Assembly: GCA_965240325.2 (NCBI GenBank) | Contig: OZ251233.1 | Location: forward strand, 1,364,001 to 1,428,000 | DNA from: Rebecca billardiae RCC1528 | Lineage: Eukaryota > Protista > Haptophyta | Length of the DNA: 64,000 nt | Direction of reading: 5' to 3' | Shown here: positions 23,306-44,100 of the stretch, piece by piece | How the letters are laid out: the number at the start of each line of letters is the position of its first letter | Numbering within the stretch: the stretch's first letter is position 1 | The notes under the pieces: model-generated | What the model saw: only the letters and a program-made list of their open reading frames with translations | Told to the model about the DNA's origin: nothing | Database searches by the model: none | Made by a program: the position numbers and the translations under genes

Positions 23306-23522
23306 GCGTCGTCATGTGGCGGTCGCCATGCTTCTTCTCCAAGACTCCTACGGTCCTACCTGGCTTTTCAAAACACGGCCGGTACGTTTCCGATCTGAGA
23401 TTGAGATTGAGATTGAGATCTCGTCGCCCGATCGCAGAGCTCGCCTTGACGCGTTCGCTCTCCAGCAGCAGTGCACGACCGCGTCGCCGGTCGCCCTATT
23501 CTTGGGCGCGGCTGGTGCCGCG

Positions 23523-24614
23523 ATGCAGCACCAACCCGAGGCCGTGAGCACGTGCGAGCGCGAGTTCATCGCGAGCGCGCTGGCGGAGGGCGTGCGAGCG
23601 GACGGGCGCGGCCTGTCGGACGCGCGCTCACCCCGCGTCACCCTCGGCCCTGCCGCGGGGACTGCGGAGGTGCGGTTGGGCGACACGAAGGTGCTCGCGG
23701 TTGTGAGCGCCGAGCTGATCGAGCCGTTCGCGGACCGGCCGACGGAGGGGACGTTCGCGCTGAGCGTTGAGCTCTCGCCGATGGCCTCGCCAGCGTTTGA
23801 GACGGGCCGGCCCACGCCCGCGGCCGTCGAGCTCAGCCGCATGCTCGAGCGCGCCATCGTCAAGAGCCACGCGGTCGACCTGGAGGCCATGTGCGTGCTC
23901 GCCGGCAAGCGCGTGTGGGCAGTGCGCTGCGACGTGACGGCGCTCGACGACTGCGGCAATCTGATCGACGCGTGCACGCTCGCGGCTGGCGCGGCTCTGC
24001 GCCACTTCCGCAAGCCGTATGTCTCCGTGCACCACCCAGATGACGGCGAGGGCGAGCCGACGGTGGTGGTGCATGCGCCCGACTCTGAGGAGCCGGAGCC
24101 ACTGGCGCTGCACCACACGCCCGTGGCGGTCTCCTTCGCGTTGGTGGAGGCGGAGGAGGGCGCGACATCGCACGTGGTGCTCGACCCGACGGAGCGTGAG
24201 GAGGCTGTCGCGACCGGGCTGCTCACCGTTGTGCTCAACCGGCAGGGCCAGCTCTGCGCGCTGCACAAGCCGGGTGGTGCGCCCGTGGGGATCGCGCAGC
24301 TGAGAGACTGCACCGCGACCGCGGCCAAGCGTGTCGAGCCGCTGCTCGCAGCGGTCGACGCGGCGATGAGCGAGAGCCCGCCAGGCACGCAGCGACCACC
24401 AGCTTACCCGCCGCCGCCATTGCCCGCCGCGCCGGACGCTACTGCTGCTGCCGCTCCGGCTGCACACACCCTCGTCCCCGAGGGAGCTGCAACTGACGCC
24501 GCGCCTGCCAAGCCGACGGTGGCGACTGCGTCCGCTGCCACGCCCCAGGCCGCGCCCTCCACAGGCCGCGGCCCTCGAAAGAAAAGGCCCAAGGTGATGA
24601 TGGCGATGGGCTGA
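23523..24614 (+). CDS. RRP45: Exosome complex component RRP45 (EXOSC9), RNase PH family
   Basis: STCEREFI..AL.EGVRADGR, GDTKVL, PFADRPTEG, ELSPMASPAFETGR, AVDLEAMCVLAGKRVWAVRCD, DDCGNLIDA, LRHFRKP, VLDPTEREE, HKPGG. Confidence 0.93.
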   Translation: MQHQPEAVSTCEREFIASALAEGVRADGRGLSDARSPRVTLGPAAGTAEVRLGDTKVLAVVSAELIEPFADRPTEGTFALSVELSPMASPAFETGRPTPAAVELSRMLERAIVKSHAVDLEAMCVLAGKRVWAVRCDVTALDDCGNLIDACTLAAGAALRHFRKPYVSVHHPDDGEGEPTVVVHAPDSEEPEPLALHHTPVAVSFALVEAEEGATSHVVLDPTEREEAVATGLLTVVLNRQGQLCALHKPGGAPVGIAQLRDCTATAAKRVEPLLAAVDAAMSESPPGTQRPPAYPPPPLPAAPDATAAAAPAAHTLVPEGAATDAAPAKPTVATASAATPQAAPSTGRGPRKKRPKVMMAMG

Positions 24615-24740: not shown

Positions 24741-25655
24741 GATGCTACTGTCAATAATGTCAATCGGACACGCGGCACCGGCCGCGCTGTGACTGCTGCC
24801 GTATCGGGCGACGCTGACAGACGACAGTGCCGTGACCGAGTGACTCACCCGCGGAGTCGGCCTCGGTTGACGACATCATGTCATGTGTGATGATGTGTGC
24901 ATGACTCGCGGAGTGTGACGCTCGTCGGACACTATCACTATAGTCATCAGCACTCGGGGCAGCCAGTAACTCAGTACTCAGTGAGCACGGCGGTAGTCGA
25001 GTACTTCGCCGCGCCCGGGCCGCGCGCGGGTCCTAACCGTACTCGGCGCGCGGTCTCTGAATTGAACTAATAACTGGTGTCAAGCAGCTAGACTGTCATC
25101 AAGGTGAAGGATTCAAGGCTCAATAACTCTCAGTCACTCACACTGCGAGCTCCGAAGCTCAGCACACTTCGGAGCGTCCGGACTAGTTCACTCGCCATCG
25201 GGCCGTGCCCGCCGCGCACTTGATCACCGAATAAGCGGCGCGGCCGCGCGGAACAGGCCGCCCGCGGCCCGCCCGCGGGCGCTGCCGCGGCGGCCGCCGG
25301 GCGCGGTATCTGATATAGTGATAGTCATCGTTGCGGCGTTTGACTCTGCGGACTCTGACGAGCTGTCGTCAGTTACACACCGTGACGGACGATGATACAT
25401 CATTACCGGGCATCCGTAATTCCGAGTCGTCATTGCGCATGCGCATATTATTAATTAATAATATAAATCTATCGGCGGCCCCGGAAGTCGACATCAGTGC
25501 ATGCCATGCCGCCACTCATGTGGGCGTAGTGGAGTTTCAAGGACTAAGGTGACAAATGGGAGGAGGGCCCACGCTGGCACCGTCGGGCTTGCCGTCGGTC
25601 CCAGCGCAGGCGGAGGGGCGCGCGGGCGTGCTCACGCGCCGACGGTGAGGCGCGC

Positions 25656-27492
25656 CTACACCGACGAGTCGGGCACGGCGTACTGCCGGCGCTGGTACAC
25701 GTAGCGCGCGATCGAGGCCGCGATCACGCACAGCAGGATGAGCATCAGCAAGAAGGCCGCGACCAAGATCTTGAAGCCGAACGAGTCAACGAATCGGAAC
25801 ATGCCGGGGCCGCCGATGCCGAAGCCGTTGAGCAGCTTGGCGTTGGCGAAGAAGTCGGTGAACGCCTCGCACGTGGTGCAGCCGTACTTGAGCTGCGAGA
25901 AGGCCACCTTCATCTTGTAGTCCTGGTGGCGGCCCTGGAACTCCTCGTCGTTGGCGCAGTAGGCGGAGGCCGCCTTGGCGGCGTTGCAGCACGCGCGCGA
26001 GCACACGTCGCCGTGGCTCTCGCCGTTGCCGCACGAGGCCTCGAAGCGCGCGAGCGGGCCCGAAGGCGGCGTGGTGGGCGTGAGGCACTTGATCCCGCCC
26101 GCCAGCTGCGCTGCGAGCGGGATCTCGTTCTGCTTGCACGCAGCCCAGGGCTGCGGCACCGTGCAGAGCTCAAAGCGCACGCTCGAGTCGGTCGTGTAGC
26201 ACCACGGGCCCTCCTCGCCGTCCGGGTTGCGGCAGTGGTTGTGCCCGCCCAGGCCGGCCTCGGGGTAGTTGAGGTGCGTGCGCGTGTGCTGCTGCGGGAA
26301 CTGCGAATCCCAGGCCTGGCACTCCTTGCCCGACTTGGTCTTGTTCACCTGGCCGCGGTAGTCCGAGCCGTCCGGCTCGCCGAAGCACTCCGTCGCCCGG
26401 TGGAAGCAGTCATCGCCGTCCCAGCCGCACGCCTCAACGTTGCACTCGCTGCGCGGGCGAGGCCGGCGCAGGGAGCGGGATAGAAGGTGAGCGGAGCGCG
26501 GACGGCGGGCACACGTGCCGTGCGGAGCTGCACCGCGCGGCGGCAGTCCTCTCACTGCAGCCGCACCGCCGCAACGCGACGCGACGCGCGCCAAGATGGG
26601 CGCAGGCGCAGGTGCACGTGCGTGCAGCGGCGCACGCACCTGTCGCACTCGCCATCGTTGATGTACTCGGGCAGGCAGCCCGTGTTGCAGCCCGAGTTCT
26701 CGCTGCAGTCGCCGCCGTCCCAGTTGCACGCCTCGACGAAGCACGCCTCGTCGCAGTACTCGTCGCCCACCCAGCCCTCGTCGCATCCCGGGGCGCAGTT
26801 CTGCTCCTCGCAATCGCCGCCGTCGTCGTAGCACGCCGACGTCTTGCACTCCTGCTCGGCGAGCGGGCAGAGCGAGCGGGGCGGTTCGGCGTGGGCCGCG
26901 AAGACGTGACGGTCAGGCACAAGCAACATCTCGCTTGCGCGCCGGCGGTGTGAGGCGTGCTGCGCGCGCGGCATGCGCACCGCGGCGCGCGCCCCCCAAC
27001 CTCACCGCCACAGCAACGCACCTGCTGGCAAACGCCATCCGCGATCATGTCCTGCTTGCACCCGGGCGAGCACTCCTGCTCGATGCGGAAGGTCGGCGTC
27101 GACGCGTCGTACACGCCGATCATGTACTCCGACTCGTCGTACCCGTACACGGACATGTGCAGGATGCACGGCTCGAACTGGCAGAACTCGATCGCGTCGC
27201 GCTTGATCACCTGCTCCTCCGCGCCCACGTCGTCCATCACCCAGGTGGCGGTGAGGTCGTCCGGCTCGGACGATGTGAAGGACAGATACACGTCCGGGTC
27301 GCCATACGAAGGGATCAACTTGATCTTGATCGCATTCGACGACTGGGGAATCTGCACGGCGTAGTACTGGAACGAGTCCTCGTTCACAAACGCCGAGTGC
27401 AGCTGACCCATCTCGAGCATCTGCTCGTCCTGGCCGGCGGCGCACCACGCACCGAGGAGTAGCAACAGCGGGGCTCCCACGCGCGACATCAT
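25656..27492 (-). CDS. Type I membrane protein: PPC-like domain, 3 LNR repeats, kringle, 8-Cys domain, TM (paralog A)
   Basis: Exons 27492-27022, 26851-26640, 26448-25656 with GT..AG introns. Signal peptide; GDPDVYLS beta-sandwich; LNR repeats such as [31 protein letters not shown]; kringle [16 protein letters not shown]...[16 protein letters not shown]; [23 protein letters not shown]. Confidence 0.9.
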
Positions 27493-28694
27493 CGCTCCTC
27501 TGCCTGTTCGACGCGCGGTTTACGGCGGCGAGGGCTGAAGGTGGACCTCGTCGATGCGGGGCGTTGGGAGCACCTCTCGGCTGCGAAACCGGACCAAAGC
27601 GCCTTTGCGGGCGGCCGGGCGCGTGCCGTGTCCCAAACGGCGCAACCCGCGCCAGACGCCAAAAGCGTTGCGGCGCCTGGACGTGAAAGGCGCACCCACG
27701 CGCGCGGCACGCCCACCTGTGAAACGCTTGATGTGCTGCGCCGGCTTAGCGGCGAGGCTCAGAACAGGCCGGGTGTGAGCTACTGAACTTGGCGTCTTAT
27801 GATTGGGCTCGACCTTTCGTCCAATAGGAAATTGTTCAGGGTGCGACCGTTGAATCACTGCATGCCGGGTAATAAAAGGTTGCCGTTCGCGCCGGACGAC
27901 CGGCGGCGTCGCAACAGGAAGACCTTGAAGTCGTGCTGATCTTCTTCGATCACTAAAAAGACGAGACCGGCTCTTCAAGATTCGATGAGGGATCTGCGTT
28001 TCTTACTTTCTTTGCTGCGATCCTCCATCCAACACGACGCACCCGCACGATGGCGGGCCGCGGACCCGGGACCGCCTTGGGCAAAAGTCACTCCTTTAGC
28101 CCCCGTGGGGGAGACCCGGAGCGATGTATGGCCGCATGGCACTCCACAGCGTCAATGCTAATGACGGCGAGGAACCGCGTGGTCTTGGAATGCCAGTATT
28201 CACACCTTACTGTCACTGACTTGTCACTAGGATATTAGTGAACAGAGGCGACGGCCGGCAGTCCAGCACTTTCGCGGACCGTCCAGCAGCTTGATTGCTG
28301 AAGTGAAGCGCCAGCCGCAAACGCACGCCAGACTCATCGGCGGTACGCTCGCTCCGCCGGCGCCGGCCCTCTGCGTGCATTGCTCATGCGCCGCCGTGTT
28401 CGGGCCGCGACTCGGGCGGCCGGCGGCCATGGCAGCCCGGAGGGCCGCGGCGGCACTCCGTCCGGGCCGCACGGTCCGCGCAGCGACGGCTCAGACGACC
28501 GGCGTCACTTTGAATATTGATCGAGTGCCGCAGAGATGACGCCGCCGCGGAATCGGGAATGCCGCCAGCACGCACTTTCGGAACTACTTCGGAGTCGGAC
28601 GATGCGGGACGTGAGCCGGCTCTGATAGGCTCCACGCCGCCAACAAACGGTTAAGGCGCGCCACTGTCGGCCTGCTGCCGTGCTGCGCCTTGCC

Positions 28695-30632
28695 TCAGTT
28701 CACTTTGACCGCACTGAGCACGCGGGGAGAGTCGCACCCACGCCGGCGTCCGCGGCACATGCCGCTGCGGCGGGCGGCGAGGCGCAGGAGAGCGCACGCC
28801 GCTGCCAGCGCGAGCGCGACGGACACCATCGGCGCCGCCGCCACCCACTCGCCCGCCACGCAGCGGACGCCATGGCTGGCGCGCGCGTGCAGCGCGGCCG
28901 CGGGCGAAGCCACGAGCGGCGGCGGCGAGTAGCCGACAAGCTGCTCCGGCGGCCCTGCCAGTGGCTCGTCAATCGCGAGCGCGGGTGCGTAGAAGCGCAC
29001 GTGCGCGAGGTGCGTGAGTGCATCCGTTGCGTCCGCGCCCGGGCCGCGCACGTGCGGCCGCGCGCGCGCCGCGACCTCCGGCTCGGCCGTGCCGAGCCAG
29101 GCGGCGACGATGCGCTCGGAAGGCGGCCACCACGGGCCGCCGGCCACGTCCAGCCCGTCGATGCGCAGCACGAGCCTGCCCGCGCGCGCGTGCAGCGCGT
29201 ACTCGTGCCACGCGCCATCCGCCACGTTGAGGCTGGCGCGCCACCCGCCCGCCGCCACGCACGAGCGCCCCACAGGCGGGCGTGGCGCACGCAGCCGCAC
29301 GCTCGGCGCAAGGTGGCCACGCCGCGCGCGCTCGAGGCCGGCGACGAGCTGCCCGCCGCCCTCGAAGACGAGGCTCCACCACATCAGCCCGTCGAGCGAG
29401 CGCGCGCCGTGCCCGTCGCCTCGCGCGGCCGCCCACCAGGTGAGCGAGAAGTCGCGCGCCCGATCGCTCTGAAGCCCGACAAGCACCTCGACGGCGTCGG
29501 CGCGCGCGTAGCTCAGGGCGCGCACGCCGAGCGGACCCTCGGCGTACGGGTGCGGCGGAGGGACGCCGTCGCGCGCGCCACAGCCGTGCGCGAACAGAAA
29601 GCCGCTCGAGCAGCCGCCCCGCGTGTCGCGCACTGCGCACGCGCCGAGGCCACCGGGTGCGTCACCGGCCGCATCCGCGCCGCTGTCGGCGTCAGCGTTG
29701 CCGCCACGGTCCAGCGGCCAGTGTGCAGTGGGCGCACGGGGGCGCGGGTCGCCCGCGCCGCCACGGGCGCCGTCGTCGATCGGCGCGACCGAGCCGTCGC
29801 ATGCGCACGTAGGCGGCGGGCGGACGCGGCCCCCGCCGCCGCCGAGCGCGTCGAGCGCGCCCGGCAGCGCGCGCAGTCGGCAGTTGAGGCCAGACGGCAG
29901 CGCCGCGACGAGCGCGGGCGACCACGCTGAGAGCACGTACGGCCCGGCGATCTGCGACCACAGGTGCGCCGCAAAGTTGGGCGTGAAGTCGTACTCGGCG
30001 TACAGCAGCAGCCGCTTAAGCGCCGCGTCGTCCCACAGCGGCCAGAAGAAGGCGTTGGCCGGCAGCGCGCGCACCTCGGCGCCGTGCGCGCGCGCGAGGC
30101 GCATGGGCAGGCGGACGGAGTGCTCGGCCCACTGCGCCTCGTCGAATGAGTCGTACGCGTCGAGCCAGCGCTGCAGGAACGGCGCGCCGGCCGGCGAGAC
30201 GATCACGGCGTTGCACAGCCCGTGCTCGCCCTGCTTGCCCTCCATCCCGAGCGCGGGCAGCGCGCTGCCGAGCAGCTCATCGAACGAGCGCAGCGCGATG
30301 ACGTCCATGTCGAGGTAGATCCCGCCCTCGCGCAGGAGGACGCGTAGCCGGACCACGTCCGCGCGATGCGCCGCGTGCGAGAGCGGGTGCCCGCTGATCT
30401 CCGTCGGGAGCTCGATCTGCCGGAGCGTCAGCAGCGGCGCGCTGCGCTCCCACCACTCGCCCGTGGGGACGTGGTGGTGGTGGAAGTGGATGGCATCGGG
30501 ACGGATGTGCGTGGCCGCGGCAAGCACGGCAAGGTAGTGCTCGTACGCGAACTCGCGGTCGCCGGGGTCCGTCGCCAGCCCGTAGACGAAATGGACCAGG
30601 CGAGGGATGCCTGCAGGCGCCGCTGGCGCCAT
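28695..30632 (-). CDS. GT32 (DXD) glycosyltransferase fused to a LamG/ConA-like domain with C-terminal TM
   Basis: IPRLVHFVY, AHRADVVRLRVLLREGGIYLDMDV, LCNAVI, FLQRW, WAEHSV, FAAHLW; then AHWPLD...DFSLTWW...ADGAWHEYAL...LRIDG...VRFYAPAL (LamG-like); hydrophobic MVSVALALAAACALLRL near the end. Confidence 0.85.
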   Translation of the reverse strand: MAPAAPAGIPRLVHFVYGLATDPGDREFAYEHYLAVLAAATHIRPDAIHFHHHHVPTGEWWERSAPLLTLRQIELPTEISGHPLSHAAHRADVVRLRVLLREGGIYLDMDVIALRSFDELLGSALPALGMEGKQGEHGLCNAVIVSPAGAPFLQRWLDAYDSFDEAQWAEHSVRLPMRLARAHGAEVRALPANAFFWPLWDDAALKRLLLYAEYDFTPNFAAHLWSQIAGPYVLSAWSPALVAALPSGLNCRLRALPGALDALGGGGGRVRPPPTCACDGSVAPIDDGARGGAGDPRPRAPTAHWPLDRGGNADADSGADAAGDAPGGLGACAVRDTRGGCSSGFLFAHGCGARDGVPPPHPYAEGPLGVRALSYARADAVEVLVGLQSDRARDFSLTWWAAARGDGHGARSLDGLMWWSLVFEGGGQLVAGLERARRGHLAPSVRLRAPRPPVGRSCVAAGGWRASLNVADGAWHEYALHARAGRLVLRIDGLDVAGGPWWPPSERIVAAWLGTAEPEVAARARPHVRGPGADATDALTHLAHVRFYAPALAIDEPLAGPPEQLVGYSPPPLVASPAAALHARASHGVRCVAGEWVAAAPMVSVALALAAACALLRLAARRSGMCRGRRRGCDSPRVLSAVKVN

Positions 30633-30808
30633 CGTGCGTGAGCGTGGTGATCAGGGCGCTTGATGCCTTGAATCCTTGATCAAGCACCGGACTCGCCTTT
30701 ATTAACGCCCGGGCGCTCGGCGCACCGTTTGCCCGGAAGGGCGGGCAAGCTCGGTGCTGTGCGCACTGCGGCCTGCGCACTGCGCAGCCTCGACTTTTCG
30801 TGTCGCTG

Positions 30809-31912
30809 ATGCAGTCATTGCTGCCGGCGGTCCTTGCCATCCTCGAGCCGCACACCTCCGTCGTGGGCAACGGCACCGTGGTGTCCTCGTCTGGCTCCCT
30901 GGCACCAGCCCTTGCTCGTCCGCTGCTCATGCGCGTCATCGCGTGCCACGAGCGCGGCACGTGGACTGGTCGCGGTGCGCGCGTCTGGGCGCCGACACCT
31001 CCGGCCCCTCAGGCGGATTGCAGCGCGATTCTGCGCCGTGCGCGCAGGCTTCTTTTCCGTACGTCCGCCCATGTTGTGCTCGTTGGCGACTCTCTCTCCT
31101 TCGAGCTCTTCGCACTCACGCGCTGGCTCGTGCAACGCACGCCACAGCTGCAGCGCAGGCTAACGGTGCACCTGGTAGGCATGCCCGTCATCCCGCGCTC
31201 GGTCAAGGGGATCCGCCGTGTGCTCCACGCGGCAGTGTGCGGCGGCGCGCGCGTTCATCCAAACGCGAGTCGCGCCCGGCCACGCGTCGTGGTGATCAAC
31301 GCGGGCCTGTGGTACAACGACGTGGCCGACATCGGGGCAGGCGCCAATGTGCTCACAACCGGCTGCGGCTCGGCGCAGCCCAACCACGAGTTCCCAGGGC
31401 GAACGACGCCCACGCCGAACGCACGATGGGCGCAATGCAACGTGTGCACCGCGTACGCTGCCGCACGGCGGTGCACCAACCAGAGCACGCGCGCAGACTA
31501 CCAGGCTGACGTGGCAGCCCTCGCGCGCGTGCTCTCTGGGCCACTGTGCCGACAGGAGCGGCCCGCTGTGCTGTGGCGCGAGTCGACACCGCAGCACTAC
31601 CCACCTCGCGGGCCTTTCTCGGACAGCTTCTTGCGGCTCCGAGCACGCCGCGGGGCTGCGCCGCCTTGCCTGCGGCGGCGCCCTGACGATGGCCGCGACT
31701 GGCGAAACCTCGTCGCAGGAAGCGCCATGCGTCGTGCTGGTCTTCCTGTCATCCCGCTCGAGGCCGCATTGGCCGTGCGCGGGGCGGACCACCCAGGGAA
31801 TGGCGATTGCACCCACTGGCGCGCGGGTTCCGCCTCGCTTGCGCATATCAGCCGAGTGGTGCTCGACGCCGTCGGCGCAGCAGCTGCTGATACGGCTGAC
31901 TCGGAACGGTGA
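30809..31912 (+). CDS. SGNH/PC-esterase (TBL-like) polysaccharide O-acyltransferase/esterase
   Basis: Signal-like N-terminus; VVLVGDSLS; VVVINAGLWY; VLWRESTPQHY; GDCTHW (DxxH). Confidence 0.8.
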   Translation: MQSLLPAVLAILEPHTSVVGNGTVVSSSGSLAPALARPLLMRVIACHERGTWTGRGARVWAPTPPAPQADCSAILRRARRLLFRTSAHVVLVGDSLSFELFALTRWLVQRTPQLQRRLTVHLVGMPVIPRSVKGIRRVLHAAVCGGARVHPNASRARPRVVVINAGLWYNDVADIGAGANVLTTGCGSAQPNHEFPGRTTPTPNARWAQCNVCTAYAAARRCTNQSTRADYQADVAALARVLSGPLCRQERPAVLWRESTPQHYPPRGPFSDSFLRLRARRGAAPPCLRRRPDDGRDWRNLVAGSAMRRAGLPVIPLEAALAVRGADHPGNGDCTHWRAGSASLAHISRVVLDAVGAAAADTADSER

Positions 31913-32177
31913 GTGGTCGGGACTGTGACATTCGCCCCTGAGCTGTGTGCGTCTCTTATTATTCTTAGTCAACTGTACATATCATGATCGGCAAGCAAGC
32001 GCCGCCATCGTGCGCGATCGAGACGGAGTGCTGCGCACGAGCGCCACTGCCTGGCCCTTCCGCTGCGACTCTTCGCGCTACGATACGAGCAGCTGGCGCG
32101 GCGGCGGCGGCGTCGGGGCCAGTGGTGGCCGAGGCGTCGTTGGTTGGGCAGGGTGCTCGTGCCGGGGGCGTCTCACC

Positions 32178-33022
32178 ATGTTTTGGATCATCGAGCAGCT
32201 GCTGCAATGGCTCCGCAGGTGCGCCCTGCGCCGGGCCAGCCTCGCGTGCGCGAACTCCCCGCGAGCGCGTCGCGCTCGGTCCCGACTGCTCCACACCTGC
32301 ACCGCCCTTGTGCGCTGCGCGCAGCCTCTTCTTCAAACAAGAGATGGAGCTGACGCTGGTCGGCTTGCAGAACTCGGGAAAGACTACACTCGTCAACGTC
32401 ATCGCGGTGCGTCCCCGTGCCAGAGCGCCGTGCGCAGGCTACTCTGCACCGTCACGCACGCGGACCTCACGCCTGCCCCTCCGTGGTCCGCGCGTGCGCA
32501 GACTGGCGCCTTCTCTGAGGACATGATCCCGACGGTTGGATTCAACATGCGCAAAGTCACCAAGGGCAAGGTGAGCCCACGTGCTTGCCTGGTTGGGCCC
32601 GCATTCGCACCTGCCGCTCATGCGTGCGCGCCCTTGTGCCCGGCCGGCGCGCGCAGGTGACAATAAAGCTGTGGGACCTTGGCGGCCAGCCGCGGTTCCG
32701 GAGCATGTGGGAGCGGTACTGCCGCGGGGTGCACGCCATTGTGTACGTCGTCGACGCTGCCGACGCGGACAACATCCCCGTCGCTCGCAACGAGCTGCAT
32801 GATCTGATCTCGAAGCCAGCGCTGATCGGCATCCCGCTGCTCGTGCTCGGCAACAAGAACGACCTGCCGAGCGCTCTCACCGCCGACGAGCTCATCGACA
32901 AGCTCCACCTCAAGGAGATCTCGGGCCGAGAAGTGTGCTGCTACTCGATCTCCGCAAAGAATCACATCAATATCGACATGACGATCGAGTGGCTCATCAA
33001 GTACTCGCGGACGGCGCGGTGA
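32178..33022 (+). CDS. ARL8: ADP-ribosylation factor-like GTPase ARL8 (4 exons)
   Basis: Exons 32178-32218, 32325-32406, 32502-32570, 32657-33022 give [78 protein letters not shown]. Confidence 0.96.
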
Positions 33023-33254
33023 AGGGGAAATCACGGCACCTTCACCTTGTGCTTGTCGGTGACGACAGCGGCGAGACCGCCCCAGCTAGGAGTGGACTGT
33101 GGAGGCCGATCGACACGTCAGTCGTCAGAGCAGACAGAGAGTCAGAGAGTCAGGGAGTCACTACAGTCAGACGGATGGTCACGCGAGCTCGCGCGATGGC
33201 TGCACAACCGGATGAGTGGCAGTGAGTGGCACCCCGCAATCGGATGCCAATCGG

Positions 33255-33260
<6 letters not shown>

Positions 33261-33325
<65 letters not shown>
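33261..33325. repeat. (TA)n microsatellite
   Basis: Directly visible. Confidence 0.97.
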
Positions 33326-33328
<3 letters not shown>

Positions 33329-33534
33329 CGACGTGGCAGCATCCGACAAGCGTCAGGCTCAGAGTGCAACAGACACATAGAATGCGTCCGCGCCTTCCGT
33401 CCAGGTCAGACAGTGCGCCACCCGCAGCCCTGCCCCCCTACGGGAGCGGGGCCGGGATGGAGCACCGCCTCGGCCTGGGGCACGCGGCGGCGACGGCAGA
33501 TGCCGCCGCGGCCGAGCGCCTTCCGGAGCACTTG

Positions 33535-34020
<486 letters not shown>

Positions 34021-35248
34021 GTTCGCCACGCGGACTCGCCGGACCCGGTGGCCGGTCGGGCGGTCGGGCGGGTCGGGCCGGGCCTCGGGACAGTCGGGTG
34101 AGTCGGGACTCGGGAGTCGGGGGGACCGGGGAGGCGGAGTCCGCGGAGTGCCGCCTGCCGGGCCTGGAAGTGGAGAGCACCACGACGATTCCCGGGTGGG
34201 AGGGGCGGACATTTTGGAGAAGTTCGAATCGGCGGTTTCCGTCCCGATGTCTATTTCACAAAGCTACTCGCGGTACCGTCGGAGTAATGTAAGTACGTAT
34301 TTCGCGCGGGTGCAAATCATTAGTGGCACTTGATGAAGTCGTTCCTTCAATTCCTCGAATCACCTCCGCCCGCACTATTCACCTACCCCTCGACCTTCGC
34401 GTTCCACAAGGAGCGCCCCGGCAAAGGGCGTCCCGGCGCGAGAGCCGCTGCCAAAGCCTCGGTAGCGGTGGGCAGTGGGCTGGGTCTCGGCGGACGGGTG
34501 CGAGTCGAGTCGGGGCCGCGCGGGGGCCGAACGGGCGGGGGAGAGACGCGGCGTCCATGGCGTATTCGCGTGCGCGCATGGATTGCTCGAACCGCCCGAG
34601 GTAGTGTGCGCCACATGTGCGTGCAGACGGCACGACGCCGCGCGAGTCAGCCAGACTGAGAGCTCGTGGTGCTCGCGCCGCACGGCGCCCGCGCTGCCCA
34701 AGCAGTGTGCGCCGGCGGAGAAGAGGAAGCTGGCGTGGGTGTCAGAATGTACGCGCGAATGCACCGAGCCCAACGCACGCATCCGCGCACGCATCCCCTC
34801 GTCTGTGACTTTGTTCACTCCGGCGGCTCAGGCCGCCGATGCGTGCCAAGTGAGGTTGCCGTCGCTGCGCCCACATCGCAAGATCGTCTTGGTCCATCGT
34901 GCTCGCGACTACCCACTGCTTGGCCCGTGATGTAGCGTAGACGACTGCTCGCCGGCTCTGGCACTCGCCGGGTCTATGCGACGGCCGGGTGCGGCGCGCC
35001 ACGCGGCCGAGTGGACGGCCCGGGCAGTGGGGCCACGCCGGTGGCCCGCGCAGCGCTCGCGCACACCGCGTGCGTGCCGCAGTGCCGCGTACGGGCACCA
35101 CTGCGCTCGCGGCTGGGCGCAGTGCAGCTAGCGGTCTGCCTTATTCTAGCACTCGCTACACACGGCCTGCTCCCTAGACTTGATGGCATCTGAAATGGTG
35201 CTGGAAGTCGAGCGTCCACACCGGCGTGCCGGCAGACGCTCGTTGCGG

Positions 35249-35707
35249 TCAGGTGTTGCGCGGGCGCAAGCCGTTGGCAGCTAGAACCCAGCTGACCTCG
35301 CGGACGCTGTGTTGCTCTCGCCAGCAGCCGAGCACGTGCCCTTGCTTGATCGCCGTGAGAGACGCGATCGCGAAGAAGTCTCAGCCGGCGCCGCAGAGCG
35401 GCAAGCGGCACATGAGATAGGATGTCGAGCTCGCGCAGCCAACACACTGGCGGTCCTCAGCAACGAGGCCGATGGCAGTGACGTCGAGCGCGCTGGCCTC
35501 GACCTGGATATCGGTCCGCTTGGTCGCGTCCACGGCTCGGTAGTGCGCTGCGACGCGCGTGAGCAGCCTCCCGAAGATCGCCGCGTGCTGCTGCTCGCGG
35601 ATGTGGGGGACGGGTCACTGGGGTTGGACGGACCACAGGATCTTGCTGTACCGCGCGACGAGGGTGGGCACAGCCTCCGCCGGCGGGTGATGCAGCTTCG
35701 CGCTGTG
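35249..35707 (-). pseudogene. Decayed coding fragment with in-frame stops
   Basis: One GC3-rich frame (PTLVARYSKILWSVQPQ*PVPHIREQQHAAIFGRLL...EDRQCVGCASSTSYLMCRL..G*DFFAIASLTAIKQGH) interrupted by TGA at 35615-35617 and 35381-35383. Confidence 0.5.
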
Positions 35708-35981
35708 CTAGATGGCAACGATGGCAACGTGGTGATGTACTGATTAAACTGCGAGCGCGGCAGCCCGCAGCAACGCTTGGATTCGACGCACGCCAAGCGT
35801 GTCACGCCGATGCTGCGTGGGCGTGCCGCGCGCGGCGCGCGCTGCGCCCCCGCGCCTTGCTCGGGGCAGCGGGGCTCGCGCGCCGCGCCCGGAGTTGTAT
35901 ATTTATACCTGCTGACTTGGCCTCGCCCGCGCGCGCGCCACCGCCCGCGCTGTCGCGCCGTCCGGCCCAGCACGCGCGCAG

Positions 35982-36195
35982 GTGATGGCGACGATCGGCC
36001 TGCCGCACAACGTCCAGTTCTACAAGTCGCAGGGCACACGGTACGATGGCTTCCGCGAGGCGTTGCTAACGGGCCGCGACGTGTTCGTGCAGTACGTGAT
36101 GCCGTGGGTCAGACATCCGCAGAGCTGGGTGTCGGTCGGCTGCAGCACCGTGCGCGACGTCGAGTGTGTGTGTGCTCGGGCACATCAAGGCCTGC
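35982..36195 (+). pseudogene. Isolated exon-like fragment
   Basis: GCGCAG acceptor, GC3-rich VMATIGLPHNVQFYKSQGTRYDGFREALLTGRDVFVQYVMPWV..., then a GTGCAC donor-like site; no neighbouring exons found. Confidence 0.4.
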
Positions 36196-37080
36196 GGTGC
36201 ACGCGCGCTGCAGCCGTGCCACCGGCCCCGCGCGCGCCCGCCATGCGGGCGGTGTGGGCGGTGTGTGCGCCTGCCCTGCGCCGCGCCGCTCGCCCCGCCG
36301 CCTTCTCTCCAACCGCCGCCTGACGTTGAGGCTGCTCCCGCCCTGATCCTCCCCTCCCTCCCCGAGCCTCCTTCCGCCGCCTGGGCCGGCCGATCGAGAA
36401 CTGGGCAGGTAGATTGAAAGGCGGCTTGTTCAAGCCGCTGGAGTTGTGTCCTACCAAAGGAGCCGCCTCTTTAACAATCGGGTTGTTTAGGGTTCAGGCT
36501 GGTGCCTTTTAAGTGCGGGTACGGACAGTCGTTTGAGATTCTCACGAAAATGACCGCCGTCCCCGTGGGGGAATCGTCGTGGTGTGCCCCCGGGCGGGAG
36601 CCGTGGCAGTGCCTCAGCCCAGCATACCGCCATATATATTAACTCCGTCACGTCAGCATCGGCAGGGGCGCGCCGGGCAAGGCCTAGTAGTCAGTCGTTG
36701 CCACGCCTAACTCCCTCAGTCTCTCACCGCTCACGGCACCGGCACCGGGACAGGCGTACGCGCGTCACATCCGCTGATCTGCGCCGCTAATGCCGCCGCC
36801 GGCTCGCGCGGCTGGGCTGCACGTGCGAGGACGCTCGTGTCCGACCGTCACACCTGATCTGCGCGCGCGCGCCGTCAGGAGACATGGCTCGACCGGGAGC
36901 CGGCTCCTGCCCACGGCCGTGATGCACGCATCGCCGCAGCGAACGCAGCAGCACCATCAGCGCGCGCAGCACGAAGCGCACGACCGCCGGGGGTCCGTGG
37001 GACGCCTCTCGCGCCATGCGGCCACCAGCTGTGCAGCAGTACCGGGGAGCGCGCGCAGCGACGCGCGTCGGCACGCTCGC

Positions 37081-38801
37081 TCAGACAGCGGCCTCGGGCA
37101 CGGCGTACTGCCGGCGCTGGTACACGTACCGCGCGATCGAGGCCGCGATCACGCAGAGCAGCAAGAGCATGATGATGAAGGCGGCGACCAGCACCTTGAA
37201 GCCGACCGAGTCCGCAAAGCGGATCAGGCCCGAGCCGCCGCCCATGCCCATGATGATCTCTGCGTTCGAGAAGAAGTCGGTGAACGCCGTGCACGTGGTG
37301 CAGTTGTACTTGAGCTGCGAGAAGGCCACCTTCATCTTGTAGTCCTGGTGGCGCCCGTGGTACTCGTCGTCGTTCGTGCAGTACGCGGCGGCCGCCTTGG
37401 CGGCGTTGCAGCACTCGCGCGAGCACACGTCGCCGTGGTTGTCGCCGTTGCCGCACGCCGCCTCAAAGCGCGCGAGCGGGCCCGAGGGCGGCGTGGTGGG
37501 CGTGAGGCACTTCACGCCGCCCGCCAGCTGCGCCGCGCGCGGGATCTCGTTCTGCTTGCAGTGCTGCCACGGCTGGCCCACGTTGCAGTGCTCCCACCGC
37601 GTCTCCGAGTCGGTCGTGTAGCACCACGGCGCGTCCTCGCCGTCCGGGTTGCGGCACTGGTTGTGCCCGCCCAGCCCGCCCTCGGGGTAGTTGAGGTGTG
37701 TGCGCGTGTGCTGCTGCGGGAACTGCGAGTCCCACGCCTGGCACTCCTTGCCCGACTTGGTCTTGTTCTTCGCGCCGCGGTAGTCCGAGCCGTCCGGCTC
37801 GCCGTAGCACTCGCTCGCCGAGTGGAAGCAGTCCTCGCCATCCCAGCTGCACGCGGCCACGTTGCACTCGCTGCGCGCGCAGCGGGCAGCGGGCGGCGGG
37901 CAGCGCGCGAGCGGGCCAGGACGAGCGCGGCGAGGTCAGCGCGGAGCGCAGGCGGTGCGCGCGCCGCCCCCTGTGCGCGCCGCACCTGTCGCACTCGCCA
38001 TCGTTGATGTACTCGGGCAGGCAGCCCGTGTTGCAGCCCGTGTTCTCGCTGCAGTCGCCGCCGTCCCAGTTGCACGCCTCGACGAAGCACGCCTCGTCGC
38101 AGTACTCGTCGCCCACCCAGCCCTCGTCGCATCCCGGGGCGCAGTTCTGCTTATCGCAGTCGCCGCCGTCGTCGTAGCACGCCGACGTCTTGCACTCCTG
38201 CTCGGCGCGCGGGCGCAGGGGCGGTTCGCGGCGCCGCGCAACGTGGCAGTTGGCGCGCGAGTCTCGCGCGGCCGCGCAGGGCGCGGCGCGAAGGGGCAGC
38301 AGGTCGGCAGCGGCAGCGGCGCGGGCGCACCTGCTGGCAAACGCCGTCAGCAATGAAGTCCTGCTTGCACCCGGGCGAGCACTCCTCCTCGATGCGCAGC
38401 GTGGACGTGGACGCGTCGTACACGCCGATCATGTACTCCGACTCGTCGTACCCGTACACGGACATGTGCAGGATGCACGGCTCGAACTGGCAGAACTCGA
38501 CGGCGTCGCGCTTGATCACCTGCTCCTCCGCGCCCACGTCGTCCATCACCCACGTCGCCGTCAGGTCGTCTGGCTCCGACGAGGTGAACGACAGGTACAC
38601 GTCCGGGTCGCCGTACGAGGGGATCAGCTTCACCTTGATCGCGTTGGACGACTGGGGGATCTGCACGGCGTAGTACTGGAAGCTGTCCTCGTTGACGAAC
38701 GCCGAGCGCAGCTGCCCCATCTCGAGCATCTGCTCATTCTGCGCGCGCGCAAGGCCCACGAGGCCGAGCGCGGCCGCGGCAAGAATGGCAAAGCGTCCCA
38801 T
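37081..38801 (-). CDS. Type I membrane protein: PPC-like domain, 3 LNR repeats, kringle, 8-Cys domain, TM (paralog B)
   Basis: Exons 38801-38331, 38197-37986, 37870-37081; same intron positions, phases and domains as paralog A. Confidence 0.9.
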
Positions 38802-39736: not shown

Positions 39737-41081
39737 ATGAAGGCCACGACGACCGACGACGAGCTCGCGCGGCTGCGCACGACGATCGCGTCGCGCGATG
39801 GGCTGCTCGAGTCGCGCGAGCTGCAGGACAACCTGCGCGATGAGATGGAGCGGATGCTCAAGTGGACCGACCAGCGAGGCCGGATGGCGGGCGCGCTCGA
39901 CGGCTCGCCGCCGCCCGCGGTCGGGGCGGGGGGGCGCGAGCCGTGGCGCGGCGTGACGTCGACGCTTGGCGAGCTCGCGCCGCCGGCGCCCCCGACCAAG
40001 GCCACCGCATACTCGCCGCGAGCCGCGGGCGCGCGGCAGCTCGCGCCGCTCGAGCACGCGGGCGCGATGGCGGGCGCATCCGCGGCCGCCGCGCCCGCGC
40101 ACGGCGGCCGGCGCACGGCGCTGCCGCGCGAGCGCGCGCCGAAGCAGGCGGGGCGACGCGAGGTGTCCTACGTCTCCGACCGCCCGGGCCACGGCTCGAG
40201 CGGCCTCTCCGCCGCGGCCGACGTGGGCCCGCTCGAGCTGCCGCCCTCGATCATCCCGCGCCCCTTCCACCTGCTGGCCGAGGGCTCGCCCTCGGCGCTG
40301 GGGCAGCGGGGCGCGGCCGGCGGCGGCGGGGCGGGCGCGCGCGGGCACGCCGCGCCGCTCGACGTCGAGTGGGACGTCGCGGCGGAGCGGCTGCGCACCA
40401 CCGTCTTCCCCGCCGCCGTGCCCTCTGGGCGGCGCGACGTGCTGCTGCTCGAGCGCTGGATGCGCACGATGCTCGGCCGGCTGCACGGACGCGCCGAGGC
40501 GAGCGTGCGCGCGCGCGAGCGCGCGAGCGCGCTGGACGAGCGCGCGCTGAGCTCGCGCGCGAGCGCGCGGCGCGACGGCGCGCACGGCGCCGACGGCGCC
40601 GCGCCCTCCGCGCAGCGCGCCGCCGAGGCGCTCGCGGCCAAGGCGGCCGAGGCCGCCTCGGCCGCGGCGGGCGAGCTCGAGCGCGAGGAGGCGACGCTCG
40701 TCTCCGAGTCGCACGCCGTGTTCACGATCGCGTTCCACGAGGTGATCCGGCAGGTGGCGGTGCACACGGTCGAGCGCGCCCGGCTGATGTCGACCATCTG
40801 GCTCTCGTACATGCACATCTTCGGCCGGATGCGCGCGCTGCACGAGTCCGCCACGCGCCGGCTGCAGGGGCTGAGCGAGCTGCTGCGCGTCGAGCTCGCG
40901 CACGCGGAGGAGGACAGGGACGCGGCGCAGGCGCGCGCCTCGCAGCTCGAGGCGGCGCTGGTGCGCGCGCTGGCGGGCGGCGAGCTCAGCGACGAGCTGC
41001 GCCAGATCGCGGCGAGCCTGGCCGCCGCCGGCGCGCCCGCGTCCGAGGCCGATGCCGCCGCCGGAGCCGCCGCCGCCGCAA

Positions 41082-41112
<31 letters not shown>

Positions 41113-44100
41113 GGACGCGAGCGAGTCGCTCGTCTCGCGCCAGGCGAAGGAGGCGCTGCGCGTGGCGCAGCAGTCGCGCGCGCTGGCCAACTCGAAGGAC
41201 ACGTCGCAGCTCGCGAGCAGCAGCAGGCCCCGCCCCTCGCGCGCCAGCTTCCTCTCGACGGGCGGCAGCTCGACGCGCTCGTCAATCAGCGCGCCCGCGG
41301 CCGGAGGCCTGAGCGTGGCCGCGGCCGAGCGCGGCGGCGGCCGGCGCAGCGCGCGGCCGAGCGGCAACCTGTCCGCGCAAGCCGAGGGGTCGGAGGCGAG
41401 CGACGACGAGGCGGACTCGGTCGTGCCCGCCATCGAGGTGGGCATCTTCGACGCCACCGTCGAGCCCAAGCTCGTGCACACCGAGCTGCCCGCCACGCTC
41501 GCGTCCGCCGCCAAGGACCGCGCCGCCTCGCTGCGCGACCGCTCGGTCGCGTGCCAGACCGACGCGGCGCTCGAGGCGGGGGCGAGCGGCTCGCTCAGCC
41601 TGAGCCAGCAGCAGCAGCTCTCGCGCGCGCTCGGCTCGCCCGCCGTCGGGCTCGCCGCCGCCGCCGTGCAGACCGACATGTCCGCCGCGATGGTCGCCGA
41701 CGCCGCGTGCCAGACGGTCGCGGACGCGCGCACGCTGCGCGAGCGCGCGCGCCACGCAGACCGCCGCTCGCACGCGCTGCTCTCGGCGAAGGCGGGGAGC
41801 GGGCGGAAGCGGCGCGGCAGCCGCGCGCGCGAGGAGCGCGAGGACGGCGACGACTCCGGCTCAAGCGTGGGCGGCAGCAGCCGCGGCGGCGGCGGCAGCG
41901 AGCGCGGCGGCGAGTCGGACAGCGGCTCGGCTGCGGAGGAGGCCGAGGGCGGGAGCGACGACGAGGCGGCGCGCGCGGCCGGCGCGGAGGCGGAGGCGCT
42001 GCAGCAGGCGGCGGAGGCGGCGGAGGAGGCGGAGCAGCTGCGGAACACGGCGACCACGCTCGCCGTCCCCGGCCTGCCCATCATCTCCGTGCCGCCCGGC
42101 GAGACGGGCGGCTCGCCGCTCGGCACGCCGCAGCGGCAGGCGCTCGCGTCCGGCCGCCTGCGCGCGCAGCACAAGGGCGGCGCGGCCGGCGGCGGCGGCC
42201 GCTCGAAGGGCGGCGCGGCCGGCGGCGGCAAGGCGAGCCAGCAGCGCGCGCGCGAGGCGCGCGCCGCCGCCGCCGAGTCCTCCACCGACCTCCCCGCGTG
42301 GGTCCCCCCCGCCTTCGCCCACTACGCCGCGTGCATCGGCTCGGTCCTCGCCTCGTTTGAGCTCGAGCCCAGATGGCTCGAGATAGGCGAGCTGCGCGCC
42401 GAGATCGCCACCTTCTACCAGTTCGTCGTCACGCTGCCGCCGCCCGCGGTGGGCGCGGCGGCGCAGGCGGGCGATGCGTCGCCGGATGGGCTCGCCTCGC
42501 GCCGGCGGCGCGGCAACCCCGTCCGCCGCCTCCTCGACGAGGTGGAGCGCACGTGCTCGCTCGGCCTGCCTCGGCTGCTGTGGTGCGCGCGGCGCGCGCG
42601 CGACGCGTCGGCCGCGGGATCGGCAGCGCGGAGGAGGATCGCGCGCAGGCCCAGCCAGCTGCCTTTGATGGTCTCGCATCTATCTGCCTCGCGCGTCCGC
42701 GCGCGTCCGCGCCCACTCAGCCGCGCGCGCGCACGTCCCGTGCCCACAACGCCCCCCCTCCCGGCGGCGCGCGCGCGCAGGCGGCACTGCTGCACGCGCT
42801 ACCCGCTGCCGCAGCGCGCGCTCGCGCAGCTGCTGACGCTGCTCTACTCCACGCACTGGCACGCCTCGCACGGCATCCTGAGCGAGGCGGCGGCGGCGGG
42901 CGCCGACCCGTTCGGCGCCGAGCCCTCGGCCTCGCGCAGCACACGGCACGCCGCGCGCGGCGCGGGGCGGCAGCCCCACGGCGGCGCGCGCGTGGACGCG
43001 CGCGTGCACACGTTTGCGCGGCTGTGCGGCATGCTGGGCGCGCAGTACGACGACGGCTCGTGCGCGCTCGTGTGCAAGGCGCTCGTGCTGCTGCTGCCGA
43101 GGAGCTCGATCCGGCGGCGACTCACCGCGGCCGAGGGCGATGGCTCCTCCGCCGCGTACGTCGGCGTGGACGAGCCCTCCGCCTCGCACCTCTGGCGCCT
43201 CCACCGCCTCGACGACGAGCTGGGCGGCGCGGCCGACGCCGCGCTGCGCTCTCACTTTGACGCGGGCGGCACGGCCGAGGGCACGCCGCACGACCGCGCG
43301 CTGCTCGACGCGATGGCGTACCTGCCGCTGGGCGAGGAGGAGCAGAGCAAGCTCGCCGCCGCGGTCGTCGCCGCCGAGGAGCACTCCACCGAGGTGCGCA
43401 CCGACGTGCCCGCCGTTGGCGCCGCCCCCGCCGAGCTGAGCGTGCGCAAGCTGCTGGTGGACGCCTTCCTCGGGCTGCTGCTGCGCGCGCAGCACGACAC
43501 GCTCAAGCACCGCACCGCCAGCTTCTCCGCAGCCTTCCACGACGCGGCGCGCTTCTCCAACGACGCGCTGCGCGACGCGAGCCGCTTCGTCGAGCTCGTG
43601 CGCGCCGTCGACGACACCAAACCCGTCGAGGAGGCGTATGAGATGTGCGCGCTACAGCGCTACAGCGCGCACGCGCGGAGGCGTGAGGCTTGCGCCTGAG
43701 CGCACACGCGCGCGCAGCGGCTCGCGCGGCGAACAGCCCTGCGCGAGCGCGCGCGCGCCTCACGCTCGCGCGCACGTGCCCCCGCGTGGCCCCTGCTTAG
43801 GTTCTGCGAGGCGCTGCACCAATCGGAGCTGCTGGGCGAGGTGGAGCGCGAGGCCGCGTGGGACTTCAGGGTCGCAGACGACCGCGACGAGCAGAGCCGC
43901 AAGATCGCACCGCCCGGCAGCGTGACGGACGTGGGCTGGATTGTGACGGCGCACCGGCACAAGCTGCTGCCAGAGCATGAGCGTGCTGCGCTGGAGCAGC
44001 TGCAGGCGGGCCCACGAGGGCGGCAGCCCGGGGCCAAGCTCTCGCCCAGTCACACGGCTCGCCACCAGCATGCCCCGTCGCCATCGCCCGCGCGTGGCGC

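Follow-up and report, generated by a model that had tools for sequence, protein, structure and literature searches.

Two paralogous genes of the haptophyte Rebecca billardiae encode predicted membrane proteins combining a beta-sandwich, three LNR modules and a kringle

Haptophytes contribute substantially to marine primary production, and their cell-surface receptors are, to our knowledge, very poorly characterised. A stretch of 64,000 nucleotides on contig OZ251233.1 of Rebecca billardiae RCC1528, hereafter the window, whose coordinates are used throughout, contains two minus-strand sets of open reading frames (ORFs) that repeat the same order and content. A first-pass annotation had interpreted them as two intact three-exon genes, here called A and B, encoding uncharacterised receptors that join Notch-type LNR repeats to a kringle, a combination it did not recognise. 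The locus raises the questions of whether these genes are real, whether their architecture is peculiar to it, and what type of protein they encode. Both genes are shown here to belong to a conserved family that is expressed and whose invariant core consists of three extracellular modules, each well understood. There is good support for A and B being real, conserved genes for non-catalytic type I membrane proteins; with moderate confidence, we regard them as an old, retained paralogue pair encoding glycoproteins of this type that serve Ca2+-stabilised binding at the cell surface.

Both genes were recovered complete on the minus strand, with intact reading frames and exclusively GT-AG introns, in agreement with the first-pass annotation. 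Gene A (25656-27492, 491 residues) comprises exon 1 (27022-27492), encoding the signal peptide, the beta-sandwich and the first half of LNR1, exon 2 (26640-26851), encoding the rest of LNR1, the complete LNR2 (26699-26806) and LNR3 up to intron 2, and exon 3 (25656-26448). Intron 1 (26852-27021, 170 nucleotides, GT..AG) lies within LNR1 and intron 2 (26449-26639, 191 nucleotides, GT..AG) within LNR3, each interrupting its repeat at the equivalent point. The encoded protein starts with the signal peptide (residues 1-20; 27433-27492), followed by a beta-sandwich resembling pre-peptidase C-terminal (PPC) and collagen-binding domains (CBD) (residues 21-137; 27082-27432) and the first half of LNR1 (27022-27081). 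Beyond the LNR block lie the kringle (residues 246-335; 26127-26396; Pfam PF00051) and a juxtamembrane eight-cysteine (8-Cys) module that is helical in the predicted model (residues 336-445; 25797-26126). The final segment (25656-25796) contains a linker, the transmembrane helix (residues 455-475), the 16-residue tail [16 protein letters not shown] and the stop codon. Gene B (37081-38801, 490 residues) likewise has three exons (38331-38801, 37986-38197 and 37081-37870), separated by introns of 133 and 115 nucleotides. Its PPC/CBD-like beta-sandwich (residues 21-137; 38391-38741) is 95% identical to that of A in the alignment, and its kringle (Pfam PF00051) occupies residues 246-335 (37549-37818). 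Every annotated element, namely signal peptide, beta-sandwich, three LNRs, kringle, 8-Cys module, transmembrane helix and tyrosine-containing tail of about 16 residues, was found.

Intron 1 of both genes ends in a NAGNAG tandem acceptor, CAGCAG... (26851-26856 in A, 38197-38202 in B). Use of the upstream AG, which would add one glutamine to LNR1 and give the 492/491-residue models, was rejected, as both the RNA joints and the C-x3-C spacing of LNR1 in proteins P0003 and P0077 favour the downstream AG. The earlier splice models were thus retained in their three-exon layout and corrected at the intron-1 acceptor, which the RNA contigs of relatives place 3 nucleotides downstream, making each protein one glutamine shorter.

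The search for RNA or DNA runs of the same strain returned none, the best share of sampled words being 0.09. Contigs from four runs of three studies, comprising three metatranscriptomes and one recorded as a guessed RNA run, were aligned to positions 25500-27650; being about 90% identical, they derive from relatives of this strain. The joint 26448 > 26640, which skips exactly the 191 nucleotides of intron 2, was present in all four runs, and the joint 26850/1 > 27021/2, which skips the 170 nucleotides of intron 1, in three. A single metatranscriptome contig of 887 nucleotides spans exon 1 (27021-27447), exon 2 (26640-26850) and exon 3 (26212-26448) and continues into the kringle, so that the LNR and kringle exons occur in one transcript of these relatives, as the annotated gene structure had implied. 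The same three-exon layout is found for KFE25_012611 of Diacronema lutheri on its genomic contig.

Two of the three core modules were assigned by sequence. The kringle (PF00051) scored well above its gathering cut-off of 34.3 in both A (E 4e-25, 88.3 bits) and B (E 2.9e-22, 79.2 bits), contains six cysteines and aligns to kringles K1-K5 of plasminogen. Exon 2 matched the LNR/Notch family (PF00066, cut-off 21.2) in A (E 8.4e-10, 39.4 bits) and B (E 2.5e-9, 37.9 bits), the start of exon 3 matched it as the second half of an LNR, and three PF00066 stretches were detected by Pfam in each of the intact orthologues P0052, P0077 and P0078. Inspection by eye, together with a hidden Markov model (HMM) built from the repeats, identified three tandem six-cysteine modules in both proteins, in keeping with the LNR pattern of modules that end in DGxDC. 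The successive domains of A and B hold 2 / 6 / 6 / 6 / 6 / 8 cysteines, the 108-residue LNR block contains 28-29 aspartates and glutamates versus 3 lysines and arginines, and one NKT sequon is located in the kringle. Across the exons of A and B and their orthologues, Pfam returned exclusively the Kringle and Notch families, with no catalytic or signalling domain; together with a tail of 16 residues, this bears out the annotated absence of a catalytic tail.

Compared with solved structures by sequence, the LNR block matched GNPTAB best (E 6e-14), followed by Notch1-3 (E 3e-9 to 1e-5) and PAPP-A (E 1e-4). The LNR domain is described as ancient in eukaryotes, with Ca2+ binding as its sole common property (PMC2770060), and the LNRs of PAPP-A act as Ca2+-binding substrate exosites and not as force caps (PMC11925022).

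For the kringle, the PDB matches included plasminogen kringle 4 chains (E ~6e-23), with about half of the aligned positions identical by manual count on the alignment, and the kringle of ROR1 (E 5e-23). In the kringle 4 alignment, A and B both have R35, D55, E57, W62, Y64 and R71, with phenylalanine (A) or tryptophan (B) at position 72. In lysine-binding kringles we take D55/D57 to form the anionic centre, K/R35 and R71 the cationic one, and W62/F64/W72 the aromatic trough. Among 106 kringles of the family, D55 was retained in 65, E57 in 72, W62 in 100, R71 in 80 and tryptophan or phenylalanine at position 72 in 98. The kringle is accordingly predicted, from these residues, to keep a pocket of lysine-binding type; two pocket positions separate the genes, 72 being W in B and F in A, and 74 H in B and L in A.

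The third core module, the N-terminal domain, was recognised by its predicted structure only, because sequence searches failed: its profile gave a chance match to PDB sequences (E 1.1), and Pfam yielded scattered weak matches among 30 family N-terminal domains (PPC in 1/30, E 0.02; UPF0669 in 2/30). AlphaFold models were obtained for single domains, from an alignment of 30 sequences for the N-terminal domain and of 15 for the 8-Cys module. The former is a nine-strand sandwich with a predicted local distance difference test (pLDDT) score of 94. Its best Foldseek match was the pre-peptidase C-terminal domain of Bacillus anthracis collagenase (5sv5; E 1.4e-4, TM-score 0.63/0.69), and the matches also included the collagen-binding domains of ColG and ColH (overall E 1.4e-4 to 1e-3, TM-scores 0.6-0.7). 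Re-alignment with VIA to the collagenase PPC/CBD domains gave Z 10.4-11.4, the highest for the ColG CBD (11.4), with a root-mean-square deviation of 2.1-2.4 over 91-97 residues. The second ectodomain sandwich of SIDT1/2 tied with them (Z ~12 in VIA), and the GOLD domains of p24/TMED proteins ranked lower (Z 8-9.5). The 'PPC-like' label of the first-pass annotation consequently holds at the level of the fold, the predicted jelly-roll superposing on the ColG and ColH CBDs, and does not extend to sequence, as the Pfam PPC model (PF04151) matched neither A nor B.

The 8-Cys module was modelled with a pLDDT of 68, with main helices H33-41, H53-66, H73-89 and H96-110, short terminal helices of low confidence and otherwise short beta bridges only. 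No meaningful fold match was obtained from Foldseek against the PDB (best E 6.6), the ESM Atlas shape search (TM-score <=0.37) or the wide VIA comparison (Z <=5.4, generic helical). Searched against 1.84 billion representative proteins, the profile of the module gave 11 matches; among those inspected, it lies directly before a transmembrane helix in P0130, P0131 and P0132 and directly after a kringle in P0128, P0131 and P0134. Match P0126 is an isolated gene fragment, and P0127, a repetitive protein of 3694 residues, was regarded as spurious. As modelled, the module is a lineage-restricted stalk of pavlovophyte-type proteins and does not resemble the alpha/beta folds of HD or SEA domains. The tyrosine-containing tail that follows the transmembrane helix has the form [12 protein letters not shown](D/E)xxV over 16 residues.

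The architecture is found well beyond this locus. When exon 3 was used as a word-search query, 47 proteins were recovered, the majority with both PF00066 and PF00051; leaving animals aside, a single match was informatively named, 'Kringle-like protein [Pavlovales sp. CCMP2436]'. The ESM Atlas feature search with the same exon produced no match that could be used. The full-length D. lutheri orthologue P0052 served as query for a second word search and as a proxy for Pfam, and this search and cluster look-ups added to the named members. These comprise three proteins of D. lutheri, i.e. KFE25_012611 (489 residues), KFE25_012297 (490 residues) and the 45%-identical KFE25_012090 (556 residues), as well as AB1Y20_020168 of Prymnesium parvum, A0A7S3TMJ6 of Emiliania huxleyi, EP00322_P005813 of Chrysochromulina rotalis and entries of Tisochrysis lutea. 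Dozens of marine metagenome and metatranscriptome clusters also belong to the family, the largest grouping 66 sequences at 90% identity. Orthologues are 75-84% identical to A and B (79-84% in D. lutheri), the closest named relative of B being KFE25_012611 (84%).

Proteins of at least 430 residues were scanned with HMMs for four modules and for hydrophobic segments. In more than 35 of them the order beta-sandwich, LNR, LNR, LNR, kringle is constant and is followed by a transmembrane segment, and this core is found in every named haptophyte hit. In pavlovophyte members the core is followed by the 8-Cys module, the transmembrane helix and the tail, while prymnesiophyte members usually have a fourth LNR before the transmembrane helix and an extra N-terminal LNR-kringle unit. 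Both additions are seen in the prymnesiophyte proteins P0060, P0074, P0088 and P0091. The LNR-kringle couple appears to be a duplicating unit within the family. Tails are mostly short (about 26-47 residues after the transmembrane segment, 60-100 in a few members), with a tyrosine after a basic stretch. A and B share the ordered core, the single C-terminal transmembrane helix and the short tyrosine-containing tail and are therefore members of the family. Their layout marks the host alga as a pavlovophyte, and the protein identity of only 79-84% sets it apart from D. lutheri NIVA-4/92. The combination that had seemed unfamiliar thus recurs in Diacronema, Prymnesium, Emiliania, Chrysochromulina and environmental data. 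The description of the genes as uncharacterised is upheld: members are labelled in databases only as 'hypothetical protein' or 'Kringle domain-containing protein', and the literature search found no paper on these proteins or on kringle proteins in haptophytes or phytoplankton.

The A and B proteins are 86% identical. Their exons 1, 2 and 3 share 85%, 98% and 86% DNA identity, and their introns and flanks do not align. Codon comparison shows purifying selection acting on both genes, with an estimated ratio of nonsynonymous to synonymous substitution (dN/dS) of 0.33 overall, 0.08 in the beta-sandwich and 0.65 in the kringle and 8-Cys module; GC content at third codon positions is 0.95. Exon 2 (26640-26851 in A, 37986-38197 in B) stands apart, with a dS of 0.026 vs 0.2-0.44 elsewhere, and it differs by about 2% from the RNA contigs of relatives, from which the other exons differ by about 10%. 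Its uniformity may reflect nucleotide-level constraint as much as gene conversion. A and B diverge most in three places: the signal peptide, the linker that precedes the transmembrane helix, and codons 301-330, which form the rim of the kringle pocket and cover its positions 72 and 74; the pocket-rim and linker differences suggest different ligand preferences, as far as sequence can indicate.

The two genes share a strand and are separated by 9.6 kb. In D. lutheri a single contig of 1.12 Mb carries both paralogue types with some 965 kb between them, and A- and B-type sequences were also seen in related environmental data. Trees of the full-length sequences gave no resolved placement of A and B relative to the D. 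lutheri genes, which is consistent with some homogenisation between the two, and the orthology of gene A was for this reason taken from synteny. The genes between A and B (28695-33022) are unrelated to the pair. Immediately upstream of gene A lies an ORF resembling DXD glycosyltransferases (28695-30632, minus strand, 645 residues; PF04488, E 3.7e-9), and the last exon of an Arf/Arl-family GTPase gene follows at 32585-33022 on the plus strand (PF00025, E 8e-30), its earlier exons probably lying upstream. KFE25_012297 of D. lutheri is preceded by Gly_transf_sug and Arf-family GTPase genes whose relative order and orientation match those in the window, with identities of 77% over 243 residues for the glycosyltransferase and 84% for the GTPase. 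Gene A is the syntenic orthologue of KFE25_012297. Given the presence of both types in D. lutheri and the synteny of the A type, the duplication predates the split of the two species.

Other features of the window were also recorded. An ORF of 370 residues between A and B (30800-31912, plus strand) gave no Pfam match; its GDS and DCTHW motifs are reminiscent of PC-esterases. Long (TA)n tracts extend over approximately 33250-34050, between the GTPase gene and gene B, and read as IYIYIY/YIYIYI in several frames. The ORF at 23298-24614 (plus strand) contains RNase_PH and RNase_PH_C domains and presumably encodes an exosome subunit of the RRP45 type. A further ORF of 1320 residues (39737-43699, plus strand), rich in alanine, glycine and arginine, has no Pfam match and overlaps long antisense ORFs, its status as a gene being doubtful.

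If the domain assignments are indicative of function, the ectodomain would act as a Ca2+-stabilised binding device on the cell surface, with the beta-sandwich and the kringle as its two ligand-binding ends, the latter offering an anionic, cationic and aromatic pocket of the lysine-binding type. By analogy with GNPTAB and PAPP-A, the acidic LNR trio could serve as a rigid, Ca2+-loaded connector or as an exosite, and the 8-Cys helical module would form the stalk. The 16-residue tail, with its conserved tyrosine and C-terminal valine, would be suited to trafficking and not to signalling. Candidate ligands include a scale or matrix glycoprotein, the surface of a prey or partner cell, and a virus. 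Several points weigh against this proposal. Surface location, Ca2+ binding and ligand binding are inferred from the domain families, and the structure models cover single domains. The modelled sandwich is equally near the SID1-family and GOLD-like folds, so that collagen-type binding is not implied, and the pocket residues W62 and W72 are also structural in kringles. The RNA support, finally, comes from relatives about 90% identical in sequence and none of it from this strain.

Alternatively, the proteins might work inside the secretory pathway, as luminal cargo receptors or assembly factors, for instance for Golgi-made organic scales, with the short tail cycling the protein between compartments. 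This would fit the match of the N-terminal domain to the GOLD domains of p24/TMED proteins (Z 8-9.5), the very short tail with its conserved aromatic and C-terminal valine residues, and the DXD glycosyltransferase gene, whose position next to the A type is conserved. A tail of the A/B type presumably resembles those of cargo receptors. The GOLD matches, however, rank below those to PPC/CBD and SIDT, kringles and LNRs are both established as domains of extracellular proteins, and the conserved glycosyltransferase neighbour may be a coincidence; we consider such a luminal role unlikely.

An obligate heteromeric co-receptor pair, in which A and B would act only together, also seems improbable. 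The retention of both paralogue types in D. lutheri, their occurrence in related environmental sequences and the 9.6-kb same-strand arrangement in R. billardiae would suit a pair, but the roughly 965 kb separating the types in D. lutheri show that the linkage is not conserved, and in prymnesiophyte members it is the LNR-kringle unit that is duplicated, inside a single chain.

The first-pass annotation had further suggested a Ca2+/mechano- or shedding-regulated receptor in the manner of the Notch negative regulatory region (NRR). On this view the three LNRs would cover a site of cleavage until force or loss of Ca2+ released them, leading to shedding and signalling. Three tandem Notch-type LNRs are indeed present in A and B, the PDB sequence search picked up the NRR structures of Notch1-3 (E 3e-9 to 1e-5), and the fourth LNR of prymnesiophyte relatives lies directly before the transmembrane helix. 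Nevertheless, Pfam found no NOD/NODP (HD) or EGF domain in the exons or orthologues, and the module preceding the membrane is mainly helical in its model, with no match to alpha/beta folds of the HD or SEA type. The LNRs of A and B, far from being membrane-adjacent, are placed about 200 residues from the membrane with the kringle and the cysteine-rich module in between, the 16-residue tail has no signalling domain, and the best LNR match is GNPTAB, whose LNRs are recognition modules. This part of the earlier proposal is weakly supported, and we regard it as quite unlikely; the presence of three LNRs is in itself no warrant for a Notch-type switch.

That the genes are artefacts or decaying copies, i.e. 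chance ORFs or pseudogenes in DNA whose GC content (58-83% across 2-kb bins of the window) allows many long spurious ORFs on both strands, is barely credible in view of the intact frames, canonical splice sites, spliced RNA contigs in relatives, orthologues 75-84% identical, dN/dS of 0.33 and Pfam E-values down to 1e-25.

Cell-surface binding by a retained paralogue pair therefore remains the preferred reading. A far more ambitious version would make these proteins the main conserved recognition receptors of haptophytes, with an LNR-based Ca2+ or force gate that evolved independently of animal Notch and with A and B providing two specificities; we see little likelihood of this, which, if true, would give haptophytes receptors for contact with prey, mates, matrix or viruses. 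Irrespective of the exact function, family members are frequent in marine assemblies, related spliced transcripts occur in RNA runs of three studies, and the family provides a concrete candidate set for studies of surface adhesion and recognition. It also shows that non-animal proteins join tandem LNR triplets to kringles while having none of the other Notch machinery. The advance is descriptive and introduces no new principle, because the family was already present, unnamed, in public databases: its modules are known, and it is the fixed architecture and the haptophyte-wide spread that appear to be undescribed.

Comparison with known systems places the family close to several of them at the level of single modules. 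With the Notch NRR, A and B share three tandem six-cysteine LNRs of the Ca2+ type (sequence match E 3e-9), but they differ from Notch receptors in having no EGF repeats, no HD (NOD/NODP) and no RAM/ANK domain. The LNRs of GNPTAB and PAPP-A are likewise Ca2+-binding recognition or exosite modules; A and B, in contrast, contain neither a Stealth transferase nor a metzincin domain and carry their LNRs in a non-enzymatic membrane protein. A single kringle in the ectodomain of a type I membrane protein is shared with ROR1/2, MuSK and Kremen1/2, whereas A and B lack the Frizzled-CRD, Ig, WSC, CUB and kinase domains of those receptors, which in turn have no LNRs. Kringle and Notch-type domains, together with PLAT, have been described within one protein in the lysyl oxidases (LOX) of ichthyosporeans (PMC4448552), the only report found in the literature search of the two combined in one protist protein; these belong to Holozoa, have a LOX catalytic domain in addition to PLAT, and do not contain the core of beta-sandwich, three LNRs and kringle. 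The clostridial collagenase PPC/CBD domains (ColG s3b, ColH s3 and 5sv5) resemble the N-terminal domain in their jelly-roll fold (TM-scores 0.63-0.69) and in a 'GDxD-hydrophobic' strand motif, but share 13-16% sequence identity with it and are not linked to it by the Pfam PPC model. The closest counterparts are found within haptophytes: the D. lutheri orthologues have the same core at 79-84% identity, KFE25_012611 with the same exon structure and KFE25_012297 in synteny with gene A, while in prymnesiophyte members a fourth LNR replaces the 8-Cys module and an N-terminal LNR-kringle unit is usually added to the shared core.

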